64,000 nt of DNA from Podarcis pityusensis (taxonomy: Eukaryota), in assembly GCA_964106645.2 (NCBI GenBank), contig OZ067043.1. One strand, written 5' to 3'. The translations under genes were made by a program, and so were the position numbers. The notes beneath the pieces are model-generated. The model was given only the letters and a program-made list of their open reading frames with translations. It was not told the DNA's origin and did not search any database. Of this stretch, positions 1 through 28,440 are shown piece after piece (positions within the stretch are counted from its first letter, which is position 1; each line of letters begins with the position of its first letter).

Positions 1-108
1 TTCTTCATAATGCTTGGAAGGTGTCCAGTTCTCATCCCAGATTTCGTCGCACATATATACTGGCTCGAGGAGCGGCATCTCAGAGCCTGAGCGTGAGCCT
101 GCTGTACC
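1..108 (-). CDS. TDRD5: TDRD5 exon B' (duplicate copy 2, truncated by window edge)
   Basis: ttttctag/[36 protein letters not shown]; in-frame 12-nt insertion versus copy 1. Confidence 0.75.
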
Positions 109-3100
109 CTAGAAAACGATTCAGGGCCAAGTTACAGTACCGTCAACTTTTTAAAGGAATGTTTTTACGTAATTCAATGCACTTTGTTTTAAACAATTCA
201 CTTGCTGATACAACAAAACTGTCTGCTAGAAGGAAAAGAGAGGGGTAGCAAGGTGGCCAGCCAGTCCTTTTAAAGGAACCCACCCCAAACTTTTCACAAG
301 AATCTCACCGGGCCACATGAGATGCTGTAGGACTCCCAAGAGCTACTCTCCTCCTCGCCGGCAATATTGGCCACCTCACTACCCCACAAAACAGCTGCCG
401 GCTTCAAGAGGCTTGTTTAACACCTCCACCACACACCCCTTTAAACTGCAGTGCAGTTTAAGTTACATGTTAGTGGGATTAGATTGTCCCAATAAAATCT
501 TTGTTTAAACAAATAAACAAATGGAAGGTATTTGTTGAGGTCTCCAAATGAAACTAGTATGGTATCTTAGATCAAAGTGATTCCATTACCCATATTATGT
601 TCTAATGGGTCTTGGAGAAGCTCTCCCTGTTAACTTTGCTCATGTATTTATTTTAACTGCTTGGATATACTTCACTAGATGCAACATCAATGCTTATTTA
701 AACAGAAAAACTCAAAAATCTCCACCTGGGAAAGCACTTCATTGTAGCAAGACCCTGAATCTGGTACTTCTGGAAGGTCACAAAGAGATTCCTGCGTAAG
801 CAAGGGCGTTTCTGCTTTTGTCAAACCAGACTGCTGCTCCGGTCCGGGTTTCAGATACAATGTGGAAAAGAATGGCTCTCTGAAATTCTGTTAAAGGCAG
901 GAGAATGAAGAATATTATTTATTTAATAAATTTGTATACAGTTTAAAGAAAAACTCTTACCAAAGTAGTTTACAAGTCATTTGCCAATGCAACGTTAAGA
1001 TAATATGAAACCAAAAACTCATACGCAGTACAGTATTTCAAAACATTACTAAAAGTCCAGAGGATCAACACTACTACCAGCTCGATACTGAAACCTAGAA
1101 CAAGCAAACCAGGGTTTACAGGTGCTTGTTTGCTCTCATTTTCTATCTTCTTACAACTTTGGCTGCTAGAATCAATGGTAACTGAGTCCTTGTTTTTTCT
1201 ACGTAGCATGCCTCTCCCAACAATCTAGATCTACTGTGTATTTTCTCCCCCTGAAAAGCACTTCCTGAGAAACAGGTTATATTACAAAAATAAAAGTTTG
1301 TTGCAGATGGATTATGCATTATCTCACAGTGTTTCCTTTTGAAAAAAGATGTAGGCAACCCTATTATGTACCCACACTTGCCCAATAACTGTGTGGGTTA
1401 TACCAAAATCACAATTGCCACTTCTTTATTTCTTTATCTGGGGCATGTGCAGGAAGGAAAAGGCATGGCTGGGTTCAAATGCCTATCAAGTAATCACACC
1501 TAACCTTGTGGATGGCAGGATCTAGAATCAATCTAGACTGAAAGCAGCATACTGAAGACACACACGAGCAATTTGGGGTCCAGAAGAACTTTCTCTGGTA
1601 AGTACAATGGGAGTGGCAAGGAAGGGCTTTATCCTCCCTAAAACTGGCATCTAACTATAGCCATTCAATCAACCTACATCAGTGATGGGACTGCATCAAC
1701 TCACCTAAGGCCAGCAACTTTTAAATTCTTTCCATTCCAGCTGGTCTTTGTAAGCAGTCTAGGAATAGCTGGTGTCTGAATTTTCTTTTTTCCCTCCTCC
1801 CCACCAAATCCATTCCGTTTTCTGTTGTGTCTTTTATATTATAAACCCAACGGCAGGGCCACTTTGAAAGTCATTTAATCTGAAGGGAAAGGGGTTACAA
1901 CTCTCTAAATTTTGCCTGTCCAACTGGGTTGATCGTGGGCTGTCCCAGCTCACGTGATGGTCCAAAAAAACCCCCTCAACAACTCTTGATCTCTGCCCCT
2001 AAATCTTTTTATTATCTTTTTAATAAATAAATCTATTGTGCTGGAGAGCATTGCCTCTGGTCTCAGACTTTGGGATAATAAAAGGGCTAGAAAGACATAG
2101 CTAAGGGATACGAAAAGGCTTTGCAACTTCACCAACAACCCATCTGACCATTTCCCTCCCATCAACACTGAACAACCACCACCTGTTGTGTCAATTCCTG
2201 GTTGTGCTGAGTCTCCTCCTTATACCCTTCATCACTCGAAGAATGGCGAGGAAACACAGCGTTGTCAGGGGACAAAGTATCACCATTTTTCTCTTCTTCA
2301 AAATGCTTGGAAGATGTCCAGTTCTCATCCCAGATTTCGTCGCACATATATACTGGCTCGAGGAGTGGCATCTCAGGGTCTGCTGTACTCTAGAAAACAA
2401 TTCGGGGCCAAGTTACAGTACCATCAACTTTTAAAAGGAAAATTTTTAATTCAACGTCCTTTGTTTTAAACAATTCACTCGCTGATAAAACAAAACTGTC
2501 TGCTAGAAGGAAAAGAGAGGGGTAGCAAGGTGGCCAGCCAGTCCTTTTAAAGGTACCCACCCCCATCTTTTCACAAGAATCTCACCGGGCCACATGAGAT
2601 GCTGTAGGACTCCCAAGAGGTACTCACCTCCTCAACGGCAATATTGGCCACCTCACTACCCCACAAAACAGCTGCCGGCTTCAAGAGGCTTGTTTAACAC
2701 CTCCACCACACACCCCTTTAAACTGCAGTGCAGTTTAAGTTACATGTTAGTGGGATTAGATTGTCCCAATAAAATCTTTGTTTAAACAAATAAACAAATG
2801 GAAGGTATTTGTTGAGGTCTCCAAATGAAACTAGTATGGTATCTTAGATCAAAGTGATTCCATTACCCATATTATGTTCTAATGGGTCTTGGAGAAGCTC
2901 TCCCTGTTAACTTTGCTCATGTATTTATTTTAACTGCTTGGATATACTTCACTAGATGCAACATCAATGCTTATTTAAACAGAAAAACTCAAAAATCTCC
3001 ACCTGGGAAAGCACTTCATTGTAGCAAGACCCTGAATCTGGTACTTCTGGAAGGTCACAAAGAGATTCCTGCGTAAGCAAGGGCGTTTCTGCTTTTGTCA

Positions 3101-6100
3101 AACCAGACTGCTGCTCCGGTCCGGGTTTCAGATACAATGTGGAAAAGAATGGCTCTCTGAAATTCTGTTAAAGGCAGGAGAATGAAGAATATTATTTATT
3201 TAATAAATTTGTATACAGTTTAAAGAAAAACTCTTACCAAAGTAGTTTACAAGTCATTTGCCAATGCAACGTTAAGATAATATGAAACCAAAAATGCAGG
3301 AATAGGAGATGAATTTTTAAAATCATCAGAAGGGATTGATGGAAGTCATAGGCTAACTATAGCCACAAATGTATAAGATGGGGTGGGATGGTTGTTTTGT
3401 CTGGAAAGTATGTTAAAACCAATAAAAAAATATTTTAAAAAGAAAAGAAGGAATAGTTCCAACCAAGGAGGACTGGTAGATAAAACTGATGGAATATGCA
3501 GAGACAGCCAAACTTACAGGAAGAAATCAGGAAGAGAAAAAAAACTAATAAAGATTGGGGTGCATTTACTGACTATTTAAAAAGTTATTGTAAACAACTT
3601 AAAGCTTTAGCAGGGTTAACTTAAAACGAACAGTAAAGAATATGTGAAGAAAGTTTACAGGAAACAAACAATTGAGGCATTTTGTAGATATGCAGAAGAA
3701 AAGATAAACCGAAGGAACCATGAATGGGGTGGGGGGAAAGTTGATTTGTTCTTATTTTGGGGTTTGTTGATTTTTATGCATTGTTGCAAAATGAAAAATG
3801 ATAAATAAAATTCATTTTTTAAAAAGATTTAACAACCTGGAAATTAACTAAAAATAACTAGGGTTTTTTTTAAAAAATATATAATAATGCAACTGAATTA
3901 AATATAATAATAATCATGTGGGCTTTTTCTGGGTCACTGATTTTTAACATACTTATAATCATCAAACTATGTTTCCACATGCTTTCACATGGTGCTCTCT
4001 TAGAAAAAAAGCATGCCATGTCATTCTTTTTATCATCCTTCCACAGACTTAACATTTTTTGGTTTGGTTTAGTTAGCACTAAGAACACTTGGGACATCCC
4101 CATCCCCCCTCAGTTTTCAATGGGTCATCACCACAAATCAGTTTAAGAACCTCATGGCCTTAAGAGATACTTATCCATTTTAACCTTCCCTTAGTGCCTC
4201 CGGCAAATATTTGCCCTCACCTTGGAAGGAAGGTTTTCTCTGCAGATGAATGCATGGCCCTTTAATCTCAGTGCATTGTGCAAGTAGACATCCTCGTCAG
4301 AGCTGGTGTCACAGAGGAAGAGGTAAAGGATTCCATCTATGTATTCATCCACGACTCCCACAAGCAGCTTCAGCTCACACAACCTTTGGAATTCATGTAT
4401 GTCACTGGCAGTCCAATTGTCCTTGATAAAGAAAGGATAAGGTACAAAGTCAAGCAGAGTTGAAAAAATAATTTCATTGGCTCTGCACATCAGATTCTAT
4501 CTAATTAGTCTTAATACATTCCAGCTGCTTTTTGTGTTCTCCTTTTGTATCTCGATTCCCCCCCCCCTAAAATAGCGCTTCAAATCTTATTTATCTTTAC
4601 TTTCCAAAACACATTTTTCTTATTCACTTATTCTTTGAGCTATTCCACCTTCTGAACTTTAAAATTCTGATGTTATCATTGCTCTTAATCCTTCATGACT
4701 CTTCTTCCGCCCTAACATCTTGTGATATACAGATATAACTGACAAGTATACCCTTGGTTGCTCCTTTCACTCCAAATAATATGCAACAAGATAGTTCAGT
4801 TGATTAGAGCATGCTGATAATGCAAAGGTTGCAGGTTCGATTCCCATGTGGGAAAGCTGCATATTCCTGCATTGCAGGGGGTTGTACTAGAATCCTGAGG
4901 GTCCCTTCAAACTCTATGATTCACTCATCCACTAGATGTAGGGCATGAAGAGAAGCAGTCTCAGCAAATACCTAACCGTTATGAGATTTCCTTAAGTATT
5001 TGCCAAAGCTTGTGCACTTTTTGGATGCAACATAAAAATGCTACAACATTGGTAAAAAATGTGCAGTAAACAAATGAACACATACGTTAAAGTTTAAAAC
5101 AAGAACAGAAAACAAAAGCCAGCTTATTTTTAAGTTGTTCCCAAACATCTAGGGTAAGGTTAGTTGAAAAAATAATACATATATACATACCTCTGTAGGT
5201 CTCACCCAAGCTAAGGAACAAGGGATTGCTTGAGCAGGAAGCTTTGCATAACAAGACCTGCAACAAGAACAAGGTAATTCAAAGGGCCACTTTTGACTTG
5301 CTGCCCCAAGCCAAGTAGTCTTGCATCAAACTGGATAATGAACAAAGCGTTGACATTTGGCATTTCCCACGAAAGAAAGTAAGCAAGACTGAGTCCACAC
5401 AAAGGTGGATTTGATTTAAATCACGATTTAAATCACTAGTCAGTAAGACTTGATTTAACTCACTTTCTTTACAGAAAGACTCATTCTTGCTGGTATCATC
5501 TTAATATTTACAACTAGAGGAAGGTTTCATTTTTTGTGTGATAAATTTTCAGAGTAGTTTTTACAGTTATATCAAAAATTACTGATTTGGTTATACTATT
5601 AGAAGTACATAGATAATTATGAAATTATTGTGTGGGTTAATAAGTTAACTGTTTATATTTGGACTTTTTAAACAATTTAGTTAACTAAAACAATAACATT
5701 ATAGCATATGTATCTATGTTTGTAAACTGATGTGGTTAAACAATTTTTTAAAAACTTAAAACTTAAAACAAATCCTTATTTCCTGATGAATAGCCTTTGG
5801 ACTATACAGGGGTCAGCAAACTTTTTCAGCAGGGGACCGGTCCACTGTCCCTCAGACCTTGTGGGGGGCAGGACTATATTTTGGAAGGAAAAAAAATGAA
5901 CGAATTTCTATGCCCACAAATAGCCCCGAGATGCATTTTAAATAAAAGCACACATTCCACTCATGTAAAAACACACTGATTCCCGGAACATCCACGGGCT
6001 GGATTTAGTAGGCAATTGGGCCGGATTCGGCCCCCGGGCCTTAGTTTGCCTATTTAGCAGAAGTGGATTTTCACCCACTTATGCTAAATAGCAAGAGTCA

Positions 6101-9100
6101 TTTTGCACTGTACTGTCTGTGTTCCCAAACGTTATTTTACTGCCTATGACAGAGGGCAAGTCAGTTTTGAAAGAACTTTGGATTTTAGGTGTGAGATGAC
6201 AAGATGTGGGAACTGATACGTAAGTGCTACCTTTGAAATCAGCCTTGGATGGTGTGGGTATGTGAGGTGGGGGCAGGCAGACAGGGAGACAGAGAAAGTG
6301 AAAAGAATGTTGAGTGAATGGACTTGTGTGTGAGAGGAAGGAAGGGTGCGTGGGATTTGCGTATGAGAGCATAAGAGTCATCTCTGCTGAATGAGGTCAA
6401 TGACCCATCTAATGAGCATCCTGTTCTTGCAGTGGCCACCTAGAAGCTTTTGGGAAGTCTGCAAGCAGGACCGGAGTGCAGCAACTCATATCCAGGAACA
6501 GACTGCCTCTGAAAGTGGAGGTAGAACATAATCTTATCCTCCATTAATTTTTCTGAGAGCAAGAGTAGAAAAGAAAGAGGTCTCACCATTCACCAGTTCT
6601 CAGCCGATAAGCATTCCCTGCCTAGCACACGATTTACTTACTTCAGAAACCTCAGCGAGGATTTCTGGGCAGTCCTCGTACTTCCGAAGTCCGGGTAAAA
6701 CACTTCCACTTCCTGGTCATTGAGCACTCGATGAATGATAACTCTGTACCACCATTTGTCTTCCGAATTTTTTATACAACAAAGCTGACCAGGACTGATT
6801 GAGGCTTCGGGCATGATGTATCGGTCAGCTACATGTTTACTAGAATAGCATCGTCTGAAATACAGGATCCAAGTGGGTCACTAACAGTACAATCCTATGG
6901 CTAAGTAGCAGACATTTGAAGTCTTAAAAAACTTTTGAGTCTCAGATATCCCTATACCATTATTAATCTGCATTGAGATCTGCAAGAGAAGTCATCCCTG
7001 TGGTCCTGTTGATGGGACAAGTACACCATGCAGTGACCACAGATAGGGTCTTATCTGTGGTGGCTATAGAACTACAACTGGCATAGAAGCAGATCCAGGA
7101 GCAGATGACAGGGTGGGGACATTTGTGCTTTGCAGGGGTTGGACTAAATTATTATTATTTCTTATTTATACCCCCTCATCTGGCTGGGTTTCCCCAGCCA
7201 CTCTGGGCGGCTCCCAACCGAATGTTAAAAACACAATACAGCATTAAACATTAAAAACTTCCCTAAACAGGGCTGCCTTCAGGTGTCTTTTAAAAGTAAG
7301 ATAGTTGCTTATTTCCTTGACATCTGATGGGAGGGTGTTCCACAGGGCAGGCGCCACTACCAAGAAGGCCCTTTGCCTGGTTCCCTGTAACTTCACTTCT
7401 TGCAAAGAGGGAACCACCAGAAGGCCCTCGGCGTTGGACCTCAGTGTCCGGGCTGAATGATGGTAGGTGGAAATGCTCCTTCAGGTATACAGGACCGAGG
7501 CCATTTAGGTCAGCACCTCCTTCTTCTTCCTCTACAATTTCATGATTCTATGATTCATCTGATGTTCAGTTGCTTGTGTCACTGTTGACTCTGGTGGATA
7601 GGTAAAGGGGCAAGGAGGCTGTAGTGAAAACACTAGTGTGTTTGCACTGCACTGACTTTGTCCCTCCTCTTCCCTGCCTGAGTGTGCAGAGCAATGAGGA
7701 CAACTGGAGGACAGGTGAACACTGCTGACTCTCCCTCTGATTACATAGACTGCTTGGGTGGCAGCTGAAAAATGCAGCTGTTCACCCAGGCTTTTGTAGG
7801 AGATTGACAAGATGGCACCAACCCAAAGAGATATGGGAAGTTTCATTGGTTGGATGCATTAAACATCTACTAAAACCCCATTTGTTTGTTCAGACCTATT
7901 TTGATGTTTAGAAGGGTTTTCTGCTCGGTTGATTATCGTGCTGCTTCAATAAAATAAAATACGAGAACCATGCACACTGAAATGTATACATCAAAGAATA
8001 CCCTTCCCAAGAAACAGGGTAAAGTTTTTGCACATGAGTTTCGACAGACCACAAGAACACCCAATACCAAACTGGGTTCTCTTTTCTCCCTGCAATCCTA
8101 GCTCATATACAACGAAAAGCCCAGACCGAAATGGGTAAGTTCCCCCTCACCTCATTTCCAACATCATGTTTTCTAACTTCACTGACGTTTCTGCACTGTA
8201 GATTCGGACATAGAATTGCGAAGGAGAGACAATGTATTCCACAAATAGTCCCACTAAAGCACTGGTGTCCAGCTGGGGAAGGCTGTAAAGGCTTCTGTCC
8301 TGGACGGCATCTGGCGGGATTTCATTTTCCATGATCTCTTGAATAATGTGAGTATCCTCTATACCCAGGTGCTGCAAACATAAGGAAAGTAAAAGAAAGT
8401 CATTCTGATCCAAGCAGTACAACAGATTCATCCGGGACACTCAAGAGATTTCCAGGGCTGGAAAATCCCAAGTACTTGACTACACGGGAATCCAAAACGC
8501 TTTCCTAGTCTTCCAAGTCTCCATCCCAACAGCAATGAGTCTGGATGCCCTAACATGCAACATAAAGTGCCACACAGACAGCCCTAACTCCATTACATCC
8601 CTTCCTGATTTTCCATACCCTCAGTGAATAATTCCTCTATGACATGGTTCTGCTGAAACATCAAAGCCTCTCTCGCTCACATTTTCCTCACTTACTTATG
8701 TGTTTACATACTTATATTCCATTTCCCCAGGCAAAAACACTGCGCAGCTTGGGATATCACTGAACTAATATAAACACAATGTAAATAAACATTCTTAATA
8801 CAATTTTAAAATGCAAACCAGAGAGATTTTTGAAAAACAAAGGTAGGAGAGACAGAGGTAGGGAAAAATCCTAATTGTGGGGGTGGGGCTATGGCTGAAT
8901 ACAGCCTGGAAACTTCTGTTACTTCAGAATTTGGTTGAGAGAAAGCTAACTGAGATTTTATGAAATTAGTGTATCACACCAATGCTTTGTCGTCTTCACT
9001 GGCTCCCAGACTATTCCCAGACCCAATTTGAGGTGTTGAACCTTTAAGGACCAGTTTGGACCAGGGTACCTGAACCACATGCCTACCAACCTACATCTAG

Positions 9101-21200: not shown

Positions 21201-21664
21201 CTTTATTGTAAAACAAACCGCACTCTGCGGGAAAATGCAAGGTAATGCCCTTGACTGCTTTATGTTCAGAGGGACCTCAAAATCAAACTACAGGACATAT
21301 TTACAATAGGCAGCTCTTTGGCCAAGTTCCATTCTTTCTTGAACCACCCAGCCTAAACTCCCTGTATGCCTGCCAAACATTATTCCCCATTTATTGGCAT
21401 TCCCTGCTCTTGCCGACTAATCCAAAACCCACCTCTGAGGACAGTATTGCCATTTCCACTAGGGCAGATGCTAACAACATCTGGCATATCCATCACCAGC
21501 TCCATGACAGAACGGTAACCCAGGGCACGAAACGGAAGTGGTTCTCCTATCATAGACTTGTATTCTTTGTTTAACTCCATAGGGGTGAGGCCTTCCTTGA
21601 CTGGTGTCAGCAGGGACCTCACTACTTTCTTCATCGAGTTCATCAGGCGTTCTTGATCGGACAT
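1..21664 (-). CDS. TDRD5: Tudor domain-containing protein 5, multi-exon CDS, 3' end beyond left edge of window
   Basis: Chain of GT-AG exons with consistent phases encoding LOTUS1 (MSDQERL...[14 protein letters not shown]), LOTUS2, LOTUS3 and Tudor ([11 protein letters not shown]...VFYPDFG); synteny with NPHS2/AXDND1. Confidence 0.96.
726..887 (-). CDS. TDRD5: TDRD5 exon A' (duplicate copy 2)
   Basis: Identical to 3003-3164 including splice sites. Confidence 0.7.
1155..1250 (-). CDS. TDRD5: Possible TDRD5 exon C
   Basis: tgcttttcag acceptor, 96-nt open frame to GTAAGA donor; alternative donor at 1119. Confidence 0.35.
2183..2389 (-). CDS. TDRD5: TDRD5 exon B (copy 1)
   Basis: 207 nt, phase 0-0, [24 protein letters not shown]...; resembles mammalian MPCLESV..DDIWDENW. 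Confidence 0.88.
3003..3164 (-). CDS. TDRD5: TDRD5 exon A (copy 1)
   Basis: 162 nt, phase 0-0, [15 protein letters not shown]...EVLSQ. Confidence 0.85.
3295..3830 (+). mobile_element. Degenerate L1-clade LINE 3' fragment
   Basis: Similar to ORF2 C-terminus of the 24982-25726 element ([10 protein letters not shown]...DW..F.DYLK); AATAAA and A-rich end; abuts the duplication breakpoint. Confidence 0.6.
4221..4421 (-). CDS. TDRD5: TDRD5 exon
   Basis: [46 protein letters not shown]... Confidence 0.95.
4788..4925 (+). mobile_element. tRNA-derived SINE with CR1-like tail
   Basis: A box (tagttcagttg), B box (ggttcgattcc), tail gggtcccttc..actctatgattc. Confidence 0.7.
5191..5257 (-). CDS. TDRD5: TDRD5 exon
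   Basis: [22 protein letters not shown]. Confidence 0.95.
5807..6052 (+). mobile_element. hAT-type MITE
   Basis: CAGGGGTCAGCAAA end; same family inverted at 25887-26450. Confidence 0.7.
6642..6854 (-). CDS. TDRD5: TDRD5 exon (Tudor core)
   Basis: [16 protein letters not shown]...[25 protein letters not shown]...LRFL. Confidence 0.96.
7150..7510 (-). mobile_element. L2 LINE 3' fragment
   Basis: Shared 3' end (cccatctggctgggtttccccagccactctgggcggc) also at ~12250, ~48540-48670, ~63240. Confidence 0.65.
8151..8371 (-). CDS. TDRD5: TDRD5 exon (extended Tudor N-part)
   Basis: EIPPDAV...[18 protein letters not shown]...MMLEMR. Confidence 0.95.
9440..9790 (+). mobile_element. Degenerate L1-clade 3' fragment
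   Basis: Similar to L1 ORF2 C-terminus; AATAAA and A-rich tail. Confidence 0.55.
9890..10041 (-). CDS. TDRD5: TDRD5 exon (linker)
   Basis: 152 nt, phase 1-0, open frame DEHASDK...SWNFPLEE...KMTTP. Confidence 0.82.
10685..10811. mobile_element. hAT MITE (~130 bp)
   Basis: TIRs CAGGC...GCCTG; 8-bp TSD acctaaga/atctaaga; related copy at 44792-44922. Confidence 0.75.
10826..11123 (-). mobile_element. L2 LINE 3' end
   Basis: Reverse complement of ~23315-23590 with (AAT)n tail. Confidence 0.8.
11205..11392 (-). mobile_element. tRNA-derived squamate SINE
   Basis: Reverse-complement A/B boxes (gctctaccactgagctatagccc); related copies at ~32715-32846, ~39660-39770. Confidence 0.6.
12438..12651. 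mobile_element. pogo/Tigger-like MITE
   Basis: TA-CAGTGGTACC...GGTACCACTG-TA. Confidence 0.85.
12866..13019 (-). CDS. TDRD5: TDRD5 exon (LOTUS 3 part)
   Basis: [31 protein letters not shown]... Confidence 0.94.
13645..13701 (-). CDS. TDRD5: TDRD5 exon (LOTUS 3 part)
   Basis: [19 protein letters not shown], tttag/gtaag. Confidence 0.92.
14391..14474 (-). CDS. TDRD5: TDRD5 exon
   Basis: [28 protein letters not shown], resembles mammalian GPGGTISSELK. Confidence 0.93.
15476..15701. mobile_element. pogo/Tigger-like MITE
   Basis: Same family as 12438-12651, TA TSD. Confidence 0.85.
17391..17590 (-). CDS. TDRD5: TDRD5 exon (linker)
   Basis: AG/GT bounded 200 nt, phase 1-0, open frame KAVIPSHK...ERMKQ. 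Confidence 0.85.
17902..19350 (+). mobile_element. Defective Tc1-like DNA transposon
   Basis: ~200-bp imperfect TIRs (agtacaccctctttgaattctgtggtt.../...aaccacagaattcaaatagggtgtact); decayed transposase MPRRKDIS...[21 protein letters not shown]. Confidence 0.88.
20053..20475 (-). CDS. TDRD5: TDRD5 exon (eLOTUS extension + LOTUS 2)
   Basis: ttttag/[18 protein letters not shown]...[19 protein letters not shown].../gtaagt, phase 1-1. Confidence 0.95.
21433..21664 (-). CDS. TDRD5: TDRD5 first coding exon (LOTUS 1)
   Basis: ATG at 21664, acceptor just above 21671, donor GTGGG at 21432; [19 protein letters not shown]... Confidence 0.95.
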
Positions 21665-22699
21665 GTTGACACTGGGGGAGGTGAGAAGGAAGTGTTAAAG
21701 GACAAAGAAATACTGCTCTTGGCGATAACCGGCTTAATAATCACCAGATAACGTTACTGTGAGATGGACAAGGGAGAACACAGTACAGGTACACAAACTG
21801 AAAAAGAGATACCTTGGAAACCCAGAGGGATCTGAAAAAACAGGTGCTCAGAAAGAGCTGCTGCTTTGTTTTTACAACGGTAACCTTTGCATGGTTTTTA
21901 GGAGGGAGTGGGGAATATCCTGATCAGTTCTTTTTTTAATGACAGTGTTGGGATTAGTACCCCACCACAGAGCCTCAGAAGCACACAACTATAACAAACC
22001 CTTACAGTTAAAGTCTGAGCAAACTGGGTACAAGGTTTATCTTTCATCTCATCTCTCTTTAACAGCACTGATAAACCCCATCATCCAAGCTCCCCCAAAA
22101 GCAATACTTGCAAGCATCAAGAGCACAGTTCAGTCAGTCATAAACACTTTAGAGCTCCTTCATGGACAACTGATAAATGTAATACCCACTACAACCTGCT
22201 GAATTTAGTAAGTGCTGAGATTCTGCTAGATTGCACCCATAAATGGATATAACAACTTTGAAGGTTCTGATCTAGGGGCATCAAGATTTAGGGACTATAA
22301 AAAGGACCAGCCCTACCACTAGGTAAAGTCAACCGCCTAAGGCAGCAGCCTCCTGGCTACTCCTCTTATGTCTCTTGGCCATTTCCCTTTGTGGGAGGAC
22401 AGAGCTGTGCAACTACACAACCTGTTCTAGCTACCCTCAACTATTATGTTGCCTTTGGTGCAGTGGAGGATGCTATCCTGCTGCCAGTGTTGAAGTCAAG
22501 TGCCACCCATTTAGTTTCTGTAGATAGAATGAGGCAGGGGTTGCCATCTGGCCCTAGCAAAACATCTTGGATCAGCCTTGGCTTGGTGCAATTTTAAGTT
22601 TTCACTATCCCATGGGGGAGTTTGGGAGCAGAGGGAAACAACGATTGAATATAAACCTGGAAAGTTATCTTCTGTTAACTTTCATAAGCCCAATAAACC

Positions 22700-23600: not shown

Positions 23601-24079
23601 TATTTCCCCCTTTTTTTACAGGAAGGGGATGAGCCATACACAAGAGTCCATCCCCAAAGTCGGTGCCACTGCTCCCACAAGCCACACCTGCCCTCTAACA
23701 AAAACATTGCAACCAAGCCTGTCACCTCAAATTAGACATACATGATTCTTGTAAGCTGTTTTATTTTATTTATTTATTTATTTTTAAAAGGTAAGAAGGT
23801 ATGTTTGTTTACTTAGCAAGCAGGTATGAATACGCCATCTTAAAATCAAACCAGAAAAATCCTTTGCACAAAAGCACTTCTAATGCAACGACTCTAGACA
23901 CCAAGGACAACACACCATAAAAAACCCGCATTATTCTATGCTATCCATGCAACCCTGTACCTTCCACGTGTTATTTGAGGGAGGGACATTCGTGTAAGAA
24001 ATCTAGGCCGCCCAACCAAGCTTCCATCCCACCCTTTCCCAAGGGCTAAAACAAGTCAGAAACAAGAAATAGCCAAATC

Positions 24080-24776
24080 ACGACCTTCCCTCCACCCCTG
24101 GGCTGGCCCTCTTTGGACCTGCACGCCCGCGACCCCCTCCTCACCACTTCCCTTCACGTGTAGGAGGAGGAGGAGGAAGCCCCTCGCCCGGACAGCAGGC
24201 TCGCGCCCTCGACCGACTGACACGAGACTGGGCGCGTTCAGACGCACGCGCCCCGCCCGAAGCCAAACTGCTCCGCCGCCCTCCGGCCCTCCCTCATTTT
24301 GAATCCCCTCCCTCTTAACGGCCGCCCGAATTTATATACGGGCCGTGTTTGTACCTCCACACGCGCAAACACGCAAGAATAGGCCCGCCCTCTCGCAGGC
24401 GCCGCTCTTTTGAAAGGCTTCTCAAGGAGCCAGACCTCAAGGCGGCGGCGGCGGCGGCGGCGGCCTTTTCTTCTTCCCTCCCTCTTTCCAACGTCTCCTC
24501 GCGCCTTTTTCAAATAATAATTAGAATAAAACGAGCAGACAAGCACAGCCCACCCCCCTAACAAACCACCGACACCAGAGCCGAGAGAGGAGGGCGGGAA
24601 AGGAGGGCCGCTCCCACCCCTGGGTGGCGGGCTCCGAGCGGGAATCGCCTCACGGGCGGCCGCTCCACGCGACGCCCTGGCCGGCCTGAGGAGAAAAGGG
24701 GGGGACTGGCCGGGGGGGGGATACCGGTCAGTGTGTTTGTGAACTGGGCTGGGGTCTTGAGTGAGGGGCATGACGC

Positions 24777-24816: not shown

Positions 24817-24981
24817 TGGGAAAGTTTGAAGCGGGTGAAGCACAGCAACTTTTGACAACGTGAGAACTGCAGCTATGCTGCAAAAGTAAACGAGTTCTCA
24901 GTATTCCATCGCGCCTGTGAAGCATTCTTTCCCTCAGATAATTCTGGACAATGTAGTTTGTTAAGGGTTGCTGGGAATTGT

Positions 24982-25726
24982 GTTGTTGTTTTTTTTAATG
25001 ATATTTATTAAAGTTTCAAAGAATACAAAAACAAAAAATAAAAATACAAGAAAATACAAAATACAGAAAAAAGAATAAAGTTTTTAAGATGTAACAAAAA
25101 AGAAAAATAAAGAAAAACATACAAGATAAAAACAGTTAAAAAAACACGTTAACTTTCCATAGCATATCTTCCTTACACTTATTTCCCCGGACCTCCTCGT
25201 ACCTCCCTTTTTTGTATTCCTGTTCAGTTTGTTAGTTCAGCAAATCCTTACCATTAAGCTTTTACCCATTTGTAAACCTTTTTTCGTATCTCTTAAAGCA
25301 TTACAGCTGGAAACCACTTAGTTTCTTTCCAACATCCTTCTGAGATTCATTAATTTTGCAATATTTCTGTAAATAGTCTTTAAATTTCTTCCAATCTTCT
25401 TCCATCGACTCTTCTCCCTGGTCTCGGATTCTGCCAGTCATTTCTGCCAATTCCATGTAGTCCATCACCTTCATCTGCCATTCTTCCAAGGTGGGTAGAT
25501 CTTGTGTCTTCCAATACTTTGCAATTAGTATTCTTGCTGCTGTTGTAGCATACATAAAAAAAGTTCTGTCCTTCTTTGGCACCAATTGGCCGACAATGTC
25601 CAGAAGAAAGGCCTCTGGTTTCTTCAGGAAGGTATATTTAAATACCTTTTTCAATTCATTATATATCATTTCCCAGAAAGCCTTAATCTTTGGGCACGTC
25701 CACCAAAGGTGAAAGAATGTACCTTC
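24982..25726 (-). mobile_element. L1-clade LINE 3' fragment with 18-bp TSD
   Basis: GTFFHLWWTCP...AARILIAKYWK ORF2 C-terminus; TSD agggttgctgggaattgt at 24964-24981 and 25727-25744. Confidence 0.88.
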
Positions 25727-27859: not shown

Positions 27860-28440
27860 GGGTAAGCATGTCTAGGCAAGAATGTTTTTAGCAGGCATCA
27901 GAAAGACTGCAGTGAAGGCATCTGCTTGATCTCAATAGGCAGGAAGTTCCACAGTGCCAGTGCTGCCACTAAATGATCGAATGCAGAATGGGCACCTGTA
28001 TAGTGCCGCTTCTGCCAATCAAAACAGTTGAGTGGGCACATGTGGGGGGTAAGGCAATCTCGTAGGTAAACTGGTCCCAAGTTGTTAAGGACTTTTCATG
28101 CTAATAGTAACACCTTGAACCTGGCCTGGTAGCATATCAGCAACCCGTGCAGGTCTCTGAGCCCAGGTGTATGGGCTGACGAGGCCTCACTCCTGTCCGC
28201 AATCGTGTTGCAGCATTCTGCATTAACTGCAGTTTCCGGATCCAGCACGAGAGAAGCCCCACACAGAGCACATTGCTGTAATCCAGTCTTGAAGCAATCA
28301 GCAAATGAACTATTGTGGCACAGCATTCCCAGTCCAGGAATAGCCATAGCTGTTGAACCAGCCACAGTTGGTAAAAGGCAGCTCTAGCCACTTCTAGCTA
28401 CCTGAGCCTCCAGTGACAGAGCAGGATGCAGAAGCAGCCC
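27860..28440 (-). mobile_element. Old L2 LINE fragment
   Basis: SRLDYSNVL...LQLMQNAA, RFKVLLL. Confidence 0.75.

Follow-up and report, generated by a model that had tools for sequence, protein, structure and literature searches.

TDRD5, which is needed for the biogenesis of PIWI-interacting RNAs (piRNAs) and for male fertility, is in vertebrates a LOTUS–Tudor scaffold of the intermitochondrial cement and chromatoid body, with three LOTUS domains, one Tudor domain and a disordered tail that carries the element MPxLExV...DIWDENW. Here we describe the TDRD5 locus in a stretch of 64,000 nucleotides (hereafter the window, with all coordinates given as window positions) from the lizard Podarcis pityusensis (GenBank assembly GCA_964106645.2, contig OZ067043.1). 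The gene and its domain plan are the same as elsewhere in vertebrates, but the long isoform of Podarcis differs in that the segment of the tail encoded by two consecutive exons, A and B, is present twice.

The best described counterpart is the mouse protein, which condenses through its LOTUS domains and the disordered region IDR4 (PMC13601554, EMBO Rep 2026). According to that report, IDR4 contains seven aromatic residues, the last four of which are collectively essential: mutating them (M4 mice) lowers piRNAs and male fertility, and the human variant p.E765* removes the same four critical residues (PMC13601554). As far as the report describes it, IDR4 is most likely the disordered region that follows the Tudor domain and corresponds to the Podarcis tail, so that both are disordered TDRD5 regions in which the number of aromatic residues may matter, although squamates lack the DTWDDSW motif, in which the four critical residues probably lie. 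The Drosophila homologue Tejas is likewise a LOTUS–Tudor protein with a disordered region that contributes to granule assembly, in its case that of nuage (cited in PMC13601554).

Two further comparisons concern the tail itself. Placental mammals and turtles have two (D/E)xWD(D/E)xW elements, spaced by about 50 residues. Two are likewise present in the long isoform of Podarcis, but there the second copy lies 127 residues away and stems from a recent duplication of a whole cassette, not from the old downstream motif. In isoform X3 of Anolis carolinensis, a B-type segment alone is repeated and both copies are without the second tryptophan (EVWDERS and EIWDNTL). The repeat of the whole two-exon cassette was found in none of the other TDRD5 proteins retrieved, among the best 120 of 548 listed.

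Tandem exon duplication in general yields adjacent copies on the same strand, compatible in phase and open to alternative inclusion; Kondrashov and Koonin in 2001 and Letunic et al. in 2002 reportedly described it as a source of new or alternative exons. The present case differs in that two exons were duplicated jointly and both pairs can be included, so the product is lengthened rather than one segment being swapped for another.

A duplicated two-exon cassette in TDRD5

An earlier note on this DNA, made from its letters alone, had named the gene as TDRD5, and the assignment is borne out by LOTUS and Tudor domain matches and by exons 90–100% identical to those of P. lilfordi TDRD5. The window exons were searched singly, and full-length comparisons used database proteins. 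Three exon translations from the minus strand match the OST-HTH/LOTUS family (PF12872), two with 48.4 and 37.7 bits (cut-off 23.8) and the third, a piece of 51 amino acids (aa), with 22.4 bits, just under the Pfam cut-off of 23.8; a single Tudor match (PF00567, 42.2 bits) lies at 6641–6868 on the minus strand, and exons A and B match no Pfam family. Searched against the window with tblastn, P. lilfordi TDRD5 finds all of its exons in order, between a start codon near 21664 and the edge of the window. The identity of the DNA itself is 98.3% with the P. lilfordi locus, over 5.8 kb, and about 95% with those of P. muralis and P. raffonei, which marks the window as DNA of a species closely related to P. 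lilfordi.

The near end of the window holds the repeat on which this study centres. By blastn, 1–1017 recurs at 2294–3294 as a single direct repeat, as the earlier note had seen, with 96.3% identity over 1017 bp, five gaps, E = 0 and a period of 2277–2293, and with no further match within the 64 kb. The exons it contains are read on the minus strand. Just upstream of them, at the end of the Tudor region, lies an exon at 4221–4420 (minus strand) that corresponds in tblastn to residues 601–668 of P. lilfordi TDRD5. It is followed by exon A (3003–3164, minus strand; 162 nt, 54 aa, phase 0–0, covered by RNA contigs) and exon B (2183–2389, minus strand; 207 nt, 69 aa), and then by exon A' (726–887, minus strand; 162 nt and identical to A in this genome) and exon B' (1–108, minus strand), of which the window edge leaves the first 108 nt, with an ancestral-type start and the donor off the window. 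Every acceptor is AG, every visible donor GT and the exon lengths are divisible by three in phase 0, and the sizes and phases claimed earlier for A and B, like the intact splice sites of A' and the intact acceptor of B', are confirmed by these signals and by translation.

Both B exons encode the motif DEIWDENW, with its codons at 2318–2341 in exon B and at 25–48 in exon B' (both on the minus strand), and the 18-residue stretch around it that the earlier note had called exactly conserved is indeed identical in the two. Outside this stretch a 12-nt indel and a few substitutions distinguish B from B', the former separating STADPE in B from a ten-residue version in B', as described before. Identity along the repeat is bimodal: 359–1017 and 2636–3294 are 100% identical over 659 bp, and 1–358 differs from 2294–2635 by 24 substitutions and two indels, about 7% divergence.

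On the evidence below we consider it likely that this is a real tandem duplication of exons A and B in the disordered region past the Tudor domain, that it arose on the Podarcis stem and that a long isoform doubles the motif.

A long stretch of perfect identity is the pattern that a mis-join of two haplotypes or of a collapsed repeat can yield, and the earlier note had itself proposed half read depth, or a 1017/1018 junction not spanned by long reads, as signs of such an artefact. In an independent DNA run, however, contigs bridge both repeat edges, 1017/1018 (by a contig at 963–1467) and 3294/3295 (3240–3361), and a contig inside the identical tract has a k-mer depth of 54 against 28–31 for single-copy sequence, about double, although depth is a poor measure of copy number. 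The remaining 358 bp, moreover, are about 7% diverged, which is excessive for alleles, and the assemblies of three other species have the same layout. Because the layout recurs in the other Podarcis loci and the edges are bridged by contigs from another individual, we regard an artefact of assembly as excluded, its probability being vanishingly small.

The same DNA run (X2), apparently of the window's own species, also contains an intronless contig in which window 15–107 is joined to 3003–3048, that is, the end of an A-type exon directly onto a B'-type exon. It has a single-copy depth of 27.5 and six mismatches, including changes in the motif region, and may represent a processed TDRD5 retrocopy elsewhere in the genome.

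Anatomy and age of the duplication

The comparison across lacertids that the earlier note proposed covered the TDRD5 loci of P. lilfordi, P. muralis, P. raffonei, Lacerta agilis and Zootoca vivipara in addition to the window. The arrangement A–B–A'–B' with intact AG and GT signals is common to all four Podarcis genomes, the window included, whereas the L. agilis and Zootoca loci each have a single A region and a single B region. The lineage-specific expansion postulated earlier is thus upheld, and since the duplication is present throughout the Podarcis sampled and a single unit in both outgroups, the tandem duplication of the A+B cassette is placed, from the compared loci, on the stem of the genus Podarcis.

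The outgroup loci suggest how the region was rearranged. Lacerta and Zootoca have the ancestral order of upstream exon, X, x', Y, A, B, Z and exon C, where x' and Y make up the flank upstream of the cassette and Z is the flank downstream; the Podarcis order is upstream exon, X, a 146-nt filler, A, B and Z, followed by Y, A', B', Z' and exon C. Unit 1 (1586–3294, minus strand) accordingly comprises exon A, the intron, exon B and the downstream flank Z, and is collinear with the single outgroup unit except for the missing Y flank. Unit 2 (1–1590, minus strand) comprises the ancestral upstream flank Y, exon A', the intron and as much of exon B' as the window holds; beyond B', the unit in P. muralis and P. 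raffonei includes another Z flank, which is followed by exon C.

The new junction lies at 1586–1590, where the end of Z is joined to the start of Y and about 5 nt fit both sides: window 1764–1586 matches L. agilis 28088–28266, upstream of exon C, and window 1590–1380 matches L. agilis 21518–21728, upstream of exon A. The earlier note had taken 1017/1018 as the junction of the duplication, which these matches contradict; 1017/1018 and 3294/3295 are instead the points at which copy 1 lacks Y. Before unit 1, the ancestral upstream flank (x' and Y) is replaced by the filler (3295–3440; 146 nt), which occurs in Podarcis only: its identity with P. lilfordi, P. muralis and P. raffonei is 97–100%, and neither the L. 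agilis nor the Zootoca locus has anything that corresponds to it. Copy 1 may have lost Y and x' later, or the event may have been complex from the outset.

For the age of the event we compared divergences and built trees; the latter used short flanks, as long intron flanks gave distances inflated (to 0.29) by lineage-specific insertions. In P. muralis and P. raffonei the two units are 93–94% identical over most of their length, Z and Z' included, with the exceptions in P. raffonei of exon A (about 90%) and of the converted B side (96%). Divergence amounts to 3–5% between Podarcis species and to 9–10% from the outgroups. In the tree, A' of P. muralis groups with A' of P. raffonei at a support of 0.999, both of them keeping ancestral states such as YNKVLSQ, and this clustering implies that A and A' separated before those two species did. 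Taken with a divergence between units that exceeds that between Podarcis species and falls short of that from the outgroups, it indicates that the duplication predates the split of these lineages.

Some local features set the loci apart. The A'–B' intron of the P. lilfordi locus (L001) differs from that of the window by an insertion of about 720 bp (23957–24676); most of the second Z flank is absent from this locus, where exon C follows only about 285 bp after B' (24961–25246). In the window, 1401–1600, 3401–3600, 4801–5000 and 5401–6000 show very high k-mer depth in all runs, with many loose ends and a peak of about 1.6 million at 5801–6000; these stretches are interspersed repeats in TDRD5 introns, and the one at about 1468–1520 adjoins the duplication junction.

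Gene conversion between the units

The 659-bp stretch of complete identity is, as judged from comparison with the other species, a gene-conversion tract, with a donor side in the A region (2636–3294) and an acceptor side (359–1017) in which A' has been overwritten by A and has the states and intron structure of copy 1. Elsewhere the same interval is about 93% identical between units in P. muralis, 90–93% in P. raffonei and 97.2% in P. lilfordi. The A' exons of the window and of P. lilfordi fall inside the copy-1 clade of the tree and have, just past the exon, the intron structure of copy 1, which is found neither with the A' of P. muralis or P. raffonei nor in the outgroups; we conclude that A overwrote A' in the genomes of the window and of P. 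lilfordi. On the B side, P. raffonei and P. muralis each have substitutions of their own that are common to B and B', so conversion acts there too, and the units exchange sequence.

The same comparison settles the direction of the 12-nt difference. Among the eight Podarcis copies, exon A always measures 162 nt, and exon B measures 219 nt except in copy 1 of the window and P. lilfordi, where it has 207 nt. The 12 nt missing from B are kept in the outgroups, in both copies of P. muralis and P. raffonei and in B' of P. lilfordi and the window, and these have the form GTA(G/S/D)SRS... in place of STADPE. The STADPE form is therefore derived, and what the earlier note had read as an insertion in B' is a deletion in B, since both outgroups have the 219-nt form, as do six of the eight Podarcis copies.

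In the independent individual, a contig on copy 1 (X2 record 24) shows copy-2 letters at 2423, 2620, 2626, 2634 and 2635; the boundary of the conversion tract may be polymorphic, or the contig may be a chimera of the assembly graph.

Transcripts and isoforms

With four exons that have splice sites and phase 0, ordinary splicing can take in one unit or both, and inclusion of both adds 123–127 residues and a second MPxLExV...(D/E)IWDENW element. Sequence contigs that bear on this were available from the independent DNA run and from three runs that we take to be RNA, from two related species. Contigs of the RNA runs lie on exons and leave introns uncovered, and their joints have CT..AC ends: 4420 to 5190 and 887 to 4221 (X15, X17 and X19), and 107 to either 725 or 3002, the joint of 107 to 725, which connects exon B' to A', being seen in X15 and X17. 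The X17 contig matches exon B' at 1–107 without mismatch.

A joint that passes from one unit to the next is found in X15 record 2, in which the end of exon B (2183) runs straight into the start of an A-type exon, and X19 has the same kind of B-to-A joint (3166 to 2186), with the copy not distinguishable. Back-splicing of B onto A within a single unit, giving a circular RNA, would produce the same exon order, and the ambiguity of X19 would accommodate it. In X15, however, the A-type part behind B has 14 mismatches to the window, the exact count for a P. muralis-type A', against one mismatch for the A exon behind the upstream exon. This contrast identifies a linear splice from B to A', as in a two-unit transcript, and we reject the circular-RNA reading as highly improbable.

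RNA runs from two related species thus show the two-unit junction, and annotated proteins with both units measure 1067 and 1086 aa in P. lilfordi, 1090 aa in P. raffonei (isoform X1, four accessions) and 1090 aa in P. muralis; together the contigs and these proteins of 1067–1090 aa substantiate the proposal that both units can be spliced in frame. Lacerta agilis (960 aa) and Zootoca vivipara (963 aa) have proteins with one unit.

Alternative exons are known to arise by tandem exon duplication, and the units might serve chiefly as an alternative cassette, most mRNAs containing one of them, in which case the duplication would add diversity of isoforms and not a higher number of motifs. Three kinds of single-unit model, all of 963 aa, are annotated in the same three Podarcis species: A+B' (P0130, P0133 and P0134), A'+B' (P0137 and P0124) and A+B (P0126). 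Yet the units are not mutually exclusive. B-to-A' contigs occur in two RNA runs, contradicting the possibility, raised in the earlier note, that transcripts only ever include one A/B pair; RefSeq lists the two-unit protein of P. raffonei as isoform X1, under four transcript accessions; and the motif itself differs little between units. We therefore think this explanation unlikely, and prefer the reading that the double-motif protein is one of several products of a duplicated cassette. We infer that the long protein is made in testis.

A conserved motif in a disordered tail

Searching exon B with phmmer against 1.84 billion representatives returned three proteins, each with one stretch of the motif. 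The tail has diverged too far for such a search, and full-length proteins were therefore gathered by a word search with one of the three, a TDRD5 of 981 aa, as the query. It gave 548 proteins, the best 120 of which were listed; these include one P. lilfordi cluster representative (P0015) with DEIWDENW twice. The pattern W(D/E)(D/E)xW occurs in 126 of the 138 proteins collected, nearly all of them TDRD5, and the mammalian DDIWDENW named in the earlier note is present in placental TDRD5 proteins.

That note had also placed the motif in a disordered tail, and both alignment and structure prediction agree with a conserved linear element. Across 65 amniote TDRD5 sequences, Pro8, Glu11 and Trp20 of exon B are invariant and L10, V13, D21 and E22 are at least 90% conserved. 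AlphaFold2 gives exon B no secondary structure, with a predicted local distance difference test score (pLDDT) of about 80 over the motif and about 50 elsewhere, which fits a linear element in a disordered region as modelled. To our knowledge, none of the kinesin light chain W-acidic, clathrin W-box and LC3-interacting region motifs fits the lacertid sequence.

Placentals and turtles have a second W-acidic element about 50 residues after DDIWDENW (DTWDDSW or ETWDDVW, for example residues 783–796 of P0117, and P0040). It is absent from the crocodilian and squamate TDRD5 proteins examined, with a remnant NHWPL in a gecko. In lacertids the site of this old downstream motif is where the intron after exon B now starts (GTG GTG GTT GTT CAG), a sequence that aligns with the coding sequence of a gecko model. 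A search of lacertid introns for a remnant of the turtle and mammal motif gave only weak matches (E > 0.1), apart from a read-through similarity to the gecko model (ELTQQ|VVVVQ) at E = 0.002–0.005.

Other tails show peculiarities of their own. Just past B and B' in the P. muralis locus (L002; 27372–27458 and 30485–30571), another frame of the intron start weakly matches a gecko exon encoding GSAADGLSQALEEFYVSIVHS (E = 0.002), which may be chance. A partial TDRD5 of 685 aa (P0001) has an exon-A-like start that is repeated, as FRELNPSTSYLKPNPKEQR and then FGELNPSTLYLQPSPEEQ, a small internal repeat in the tail. The Anolis isoform X3 (P0020) has its independent tandem repeat of an exon-B-like segment at about 730–880, as seen in the predicted protein only.

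The placental comparison allows a putative mapping of the mouse results. In the 981-aa chimpanzee orthologue the aromatic residues past position 765 are Y772, W783, F785, W792 and W796, and the critical four of IDR4, as described in the report, are probably W783, F785, W792 and W796, in the second motif DTWDDSW, an assignment that depends on the numbering of isoforms. In the long isoform of Podarcis the disordered region past the Tudor domain has about 300 aa, against 173 aa in the single-unit form, with four tryptophans against two and about 21 aromatic residues against 11. By analogy, the extra aromatic-acidic element would raise the number of stickers that drive TDRD5 condensation, and an effect of the additional copy on valency, as the earlier note had suggested, is plausible.

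Selection or neutral retention

Whether the second unit matters to the protein has to be weighed against the possibility that the duplication is real and sometimes spliced in but without effect, the tail tolerating some 125 extra residues and gene conversion keeping unit 2 intact. Several observations favour such a neutral passenger and weigh against a functional reading of the double motif. The units evolve in concert, B and B' through the changes they share within P. raffonei and P. muralis and A' by being overwritten in the window and P. lilfordi. The ratio of nonsynonymous to synonymous differences per site (pN/pS) is 0.39–0.58 between A and A' and 0.37–0.44 between B and B' where nonsynonymous changes exist, similar to the 0.45–0.47 between L. 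agilis and Zootoca; this likeness to orthologues in itself favours the main reading, but the values rest on small counts of 5–18 substitutions each, and conversion by itself could preserve a copy that is of no use. Several squamates (skinks, cordylids, Anolis and a gecko) have lost the motif's second tryptophan, which argues that it is dispensable there and under weak constraint. The tryptophans of DDIWDENW (737–744 in the chimpanzee orthologue), again depending on isoform numbering, are probably among the three residues whose mutation has a mild effect, as far as the mouse report describes them. Finally, since single-unit isoforms are annotated in all three of the other Podarcis species, the long form may be minor, and the RNA support for it comes from contigs, with no tissue label, of two related species other than that of the window.

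Against neutrality, four species have retained unit 2, its frame and splice sites unbroken, from a time before they separated; in P. muralis and P. raffonei, A' escaped conversion, is about 7–10% diverged and still has a pN/pS of 0.4–0.6; and the 20-residue motif stretch is unchanged in all eight Podarcis copies. We regard neutral retention as a serious contender, though the less probable course.

Implications

Two-unit proteins are already annotated, as RefSeq isoform X1 in P. raffonei and as ENA models in P. lilfordi, and no paper that names TDRD5 together with Podarcis was found in the literature searched. As an example of its kind the locus is clean, combining a two-exon tandem duplication with mapped breakpoints, a known outgroup state and ongoing gene conversion.

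A more far-reaching scenario, which we put forward as speculative and rather doubtful, is that squamates lost the second W-acidic element and that Podarcis regained a tail with two elements and four tryptophans by duplicating the cassette, in a form that can be switched by splicing and that is kept by selection and not by conversion alone. The 2026 mouse study connects the phase separation of TDRD5 with how many aromatic residues one of its disordered regions contains (PMC13601554), and the matched long and short TDRD5 proteins that Podarcis makes from one gene would be suitable material for testing how the number of stickers relates to the properties of condensates. If the scenario is true, Podarcis would represent a natural experiment in tuning the sticker number and condensate behaviour of a scaffold of the piRNA pathway.

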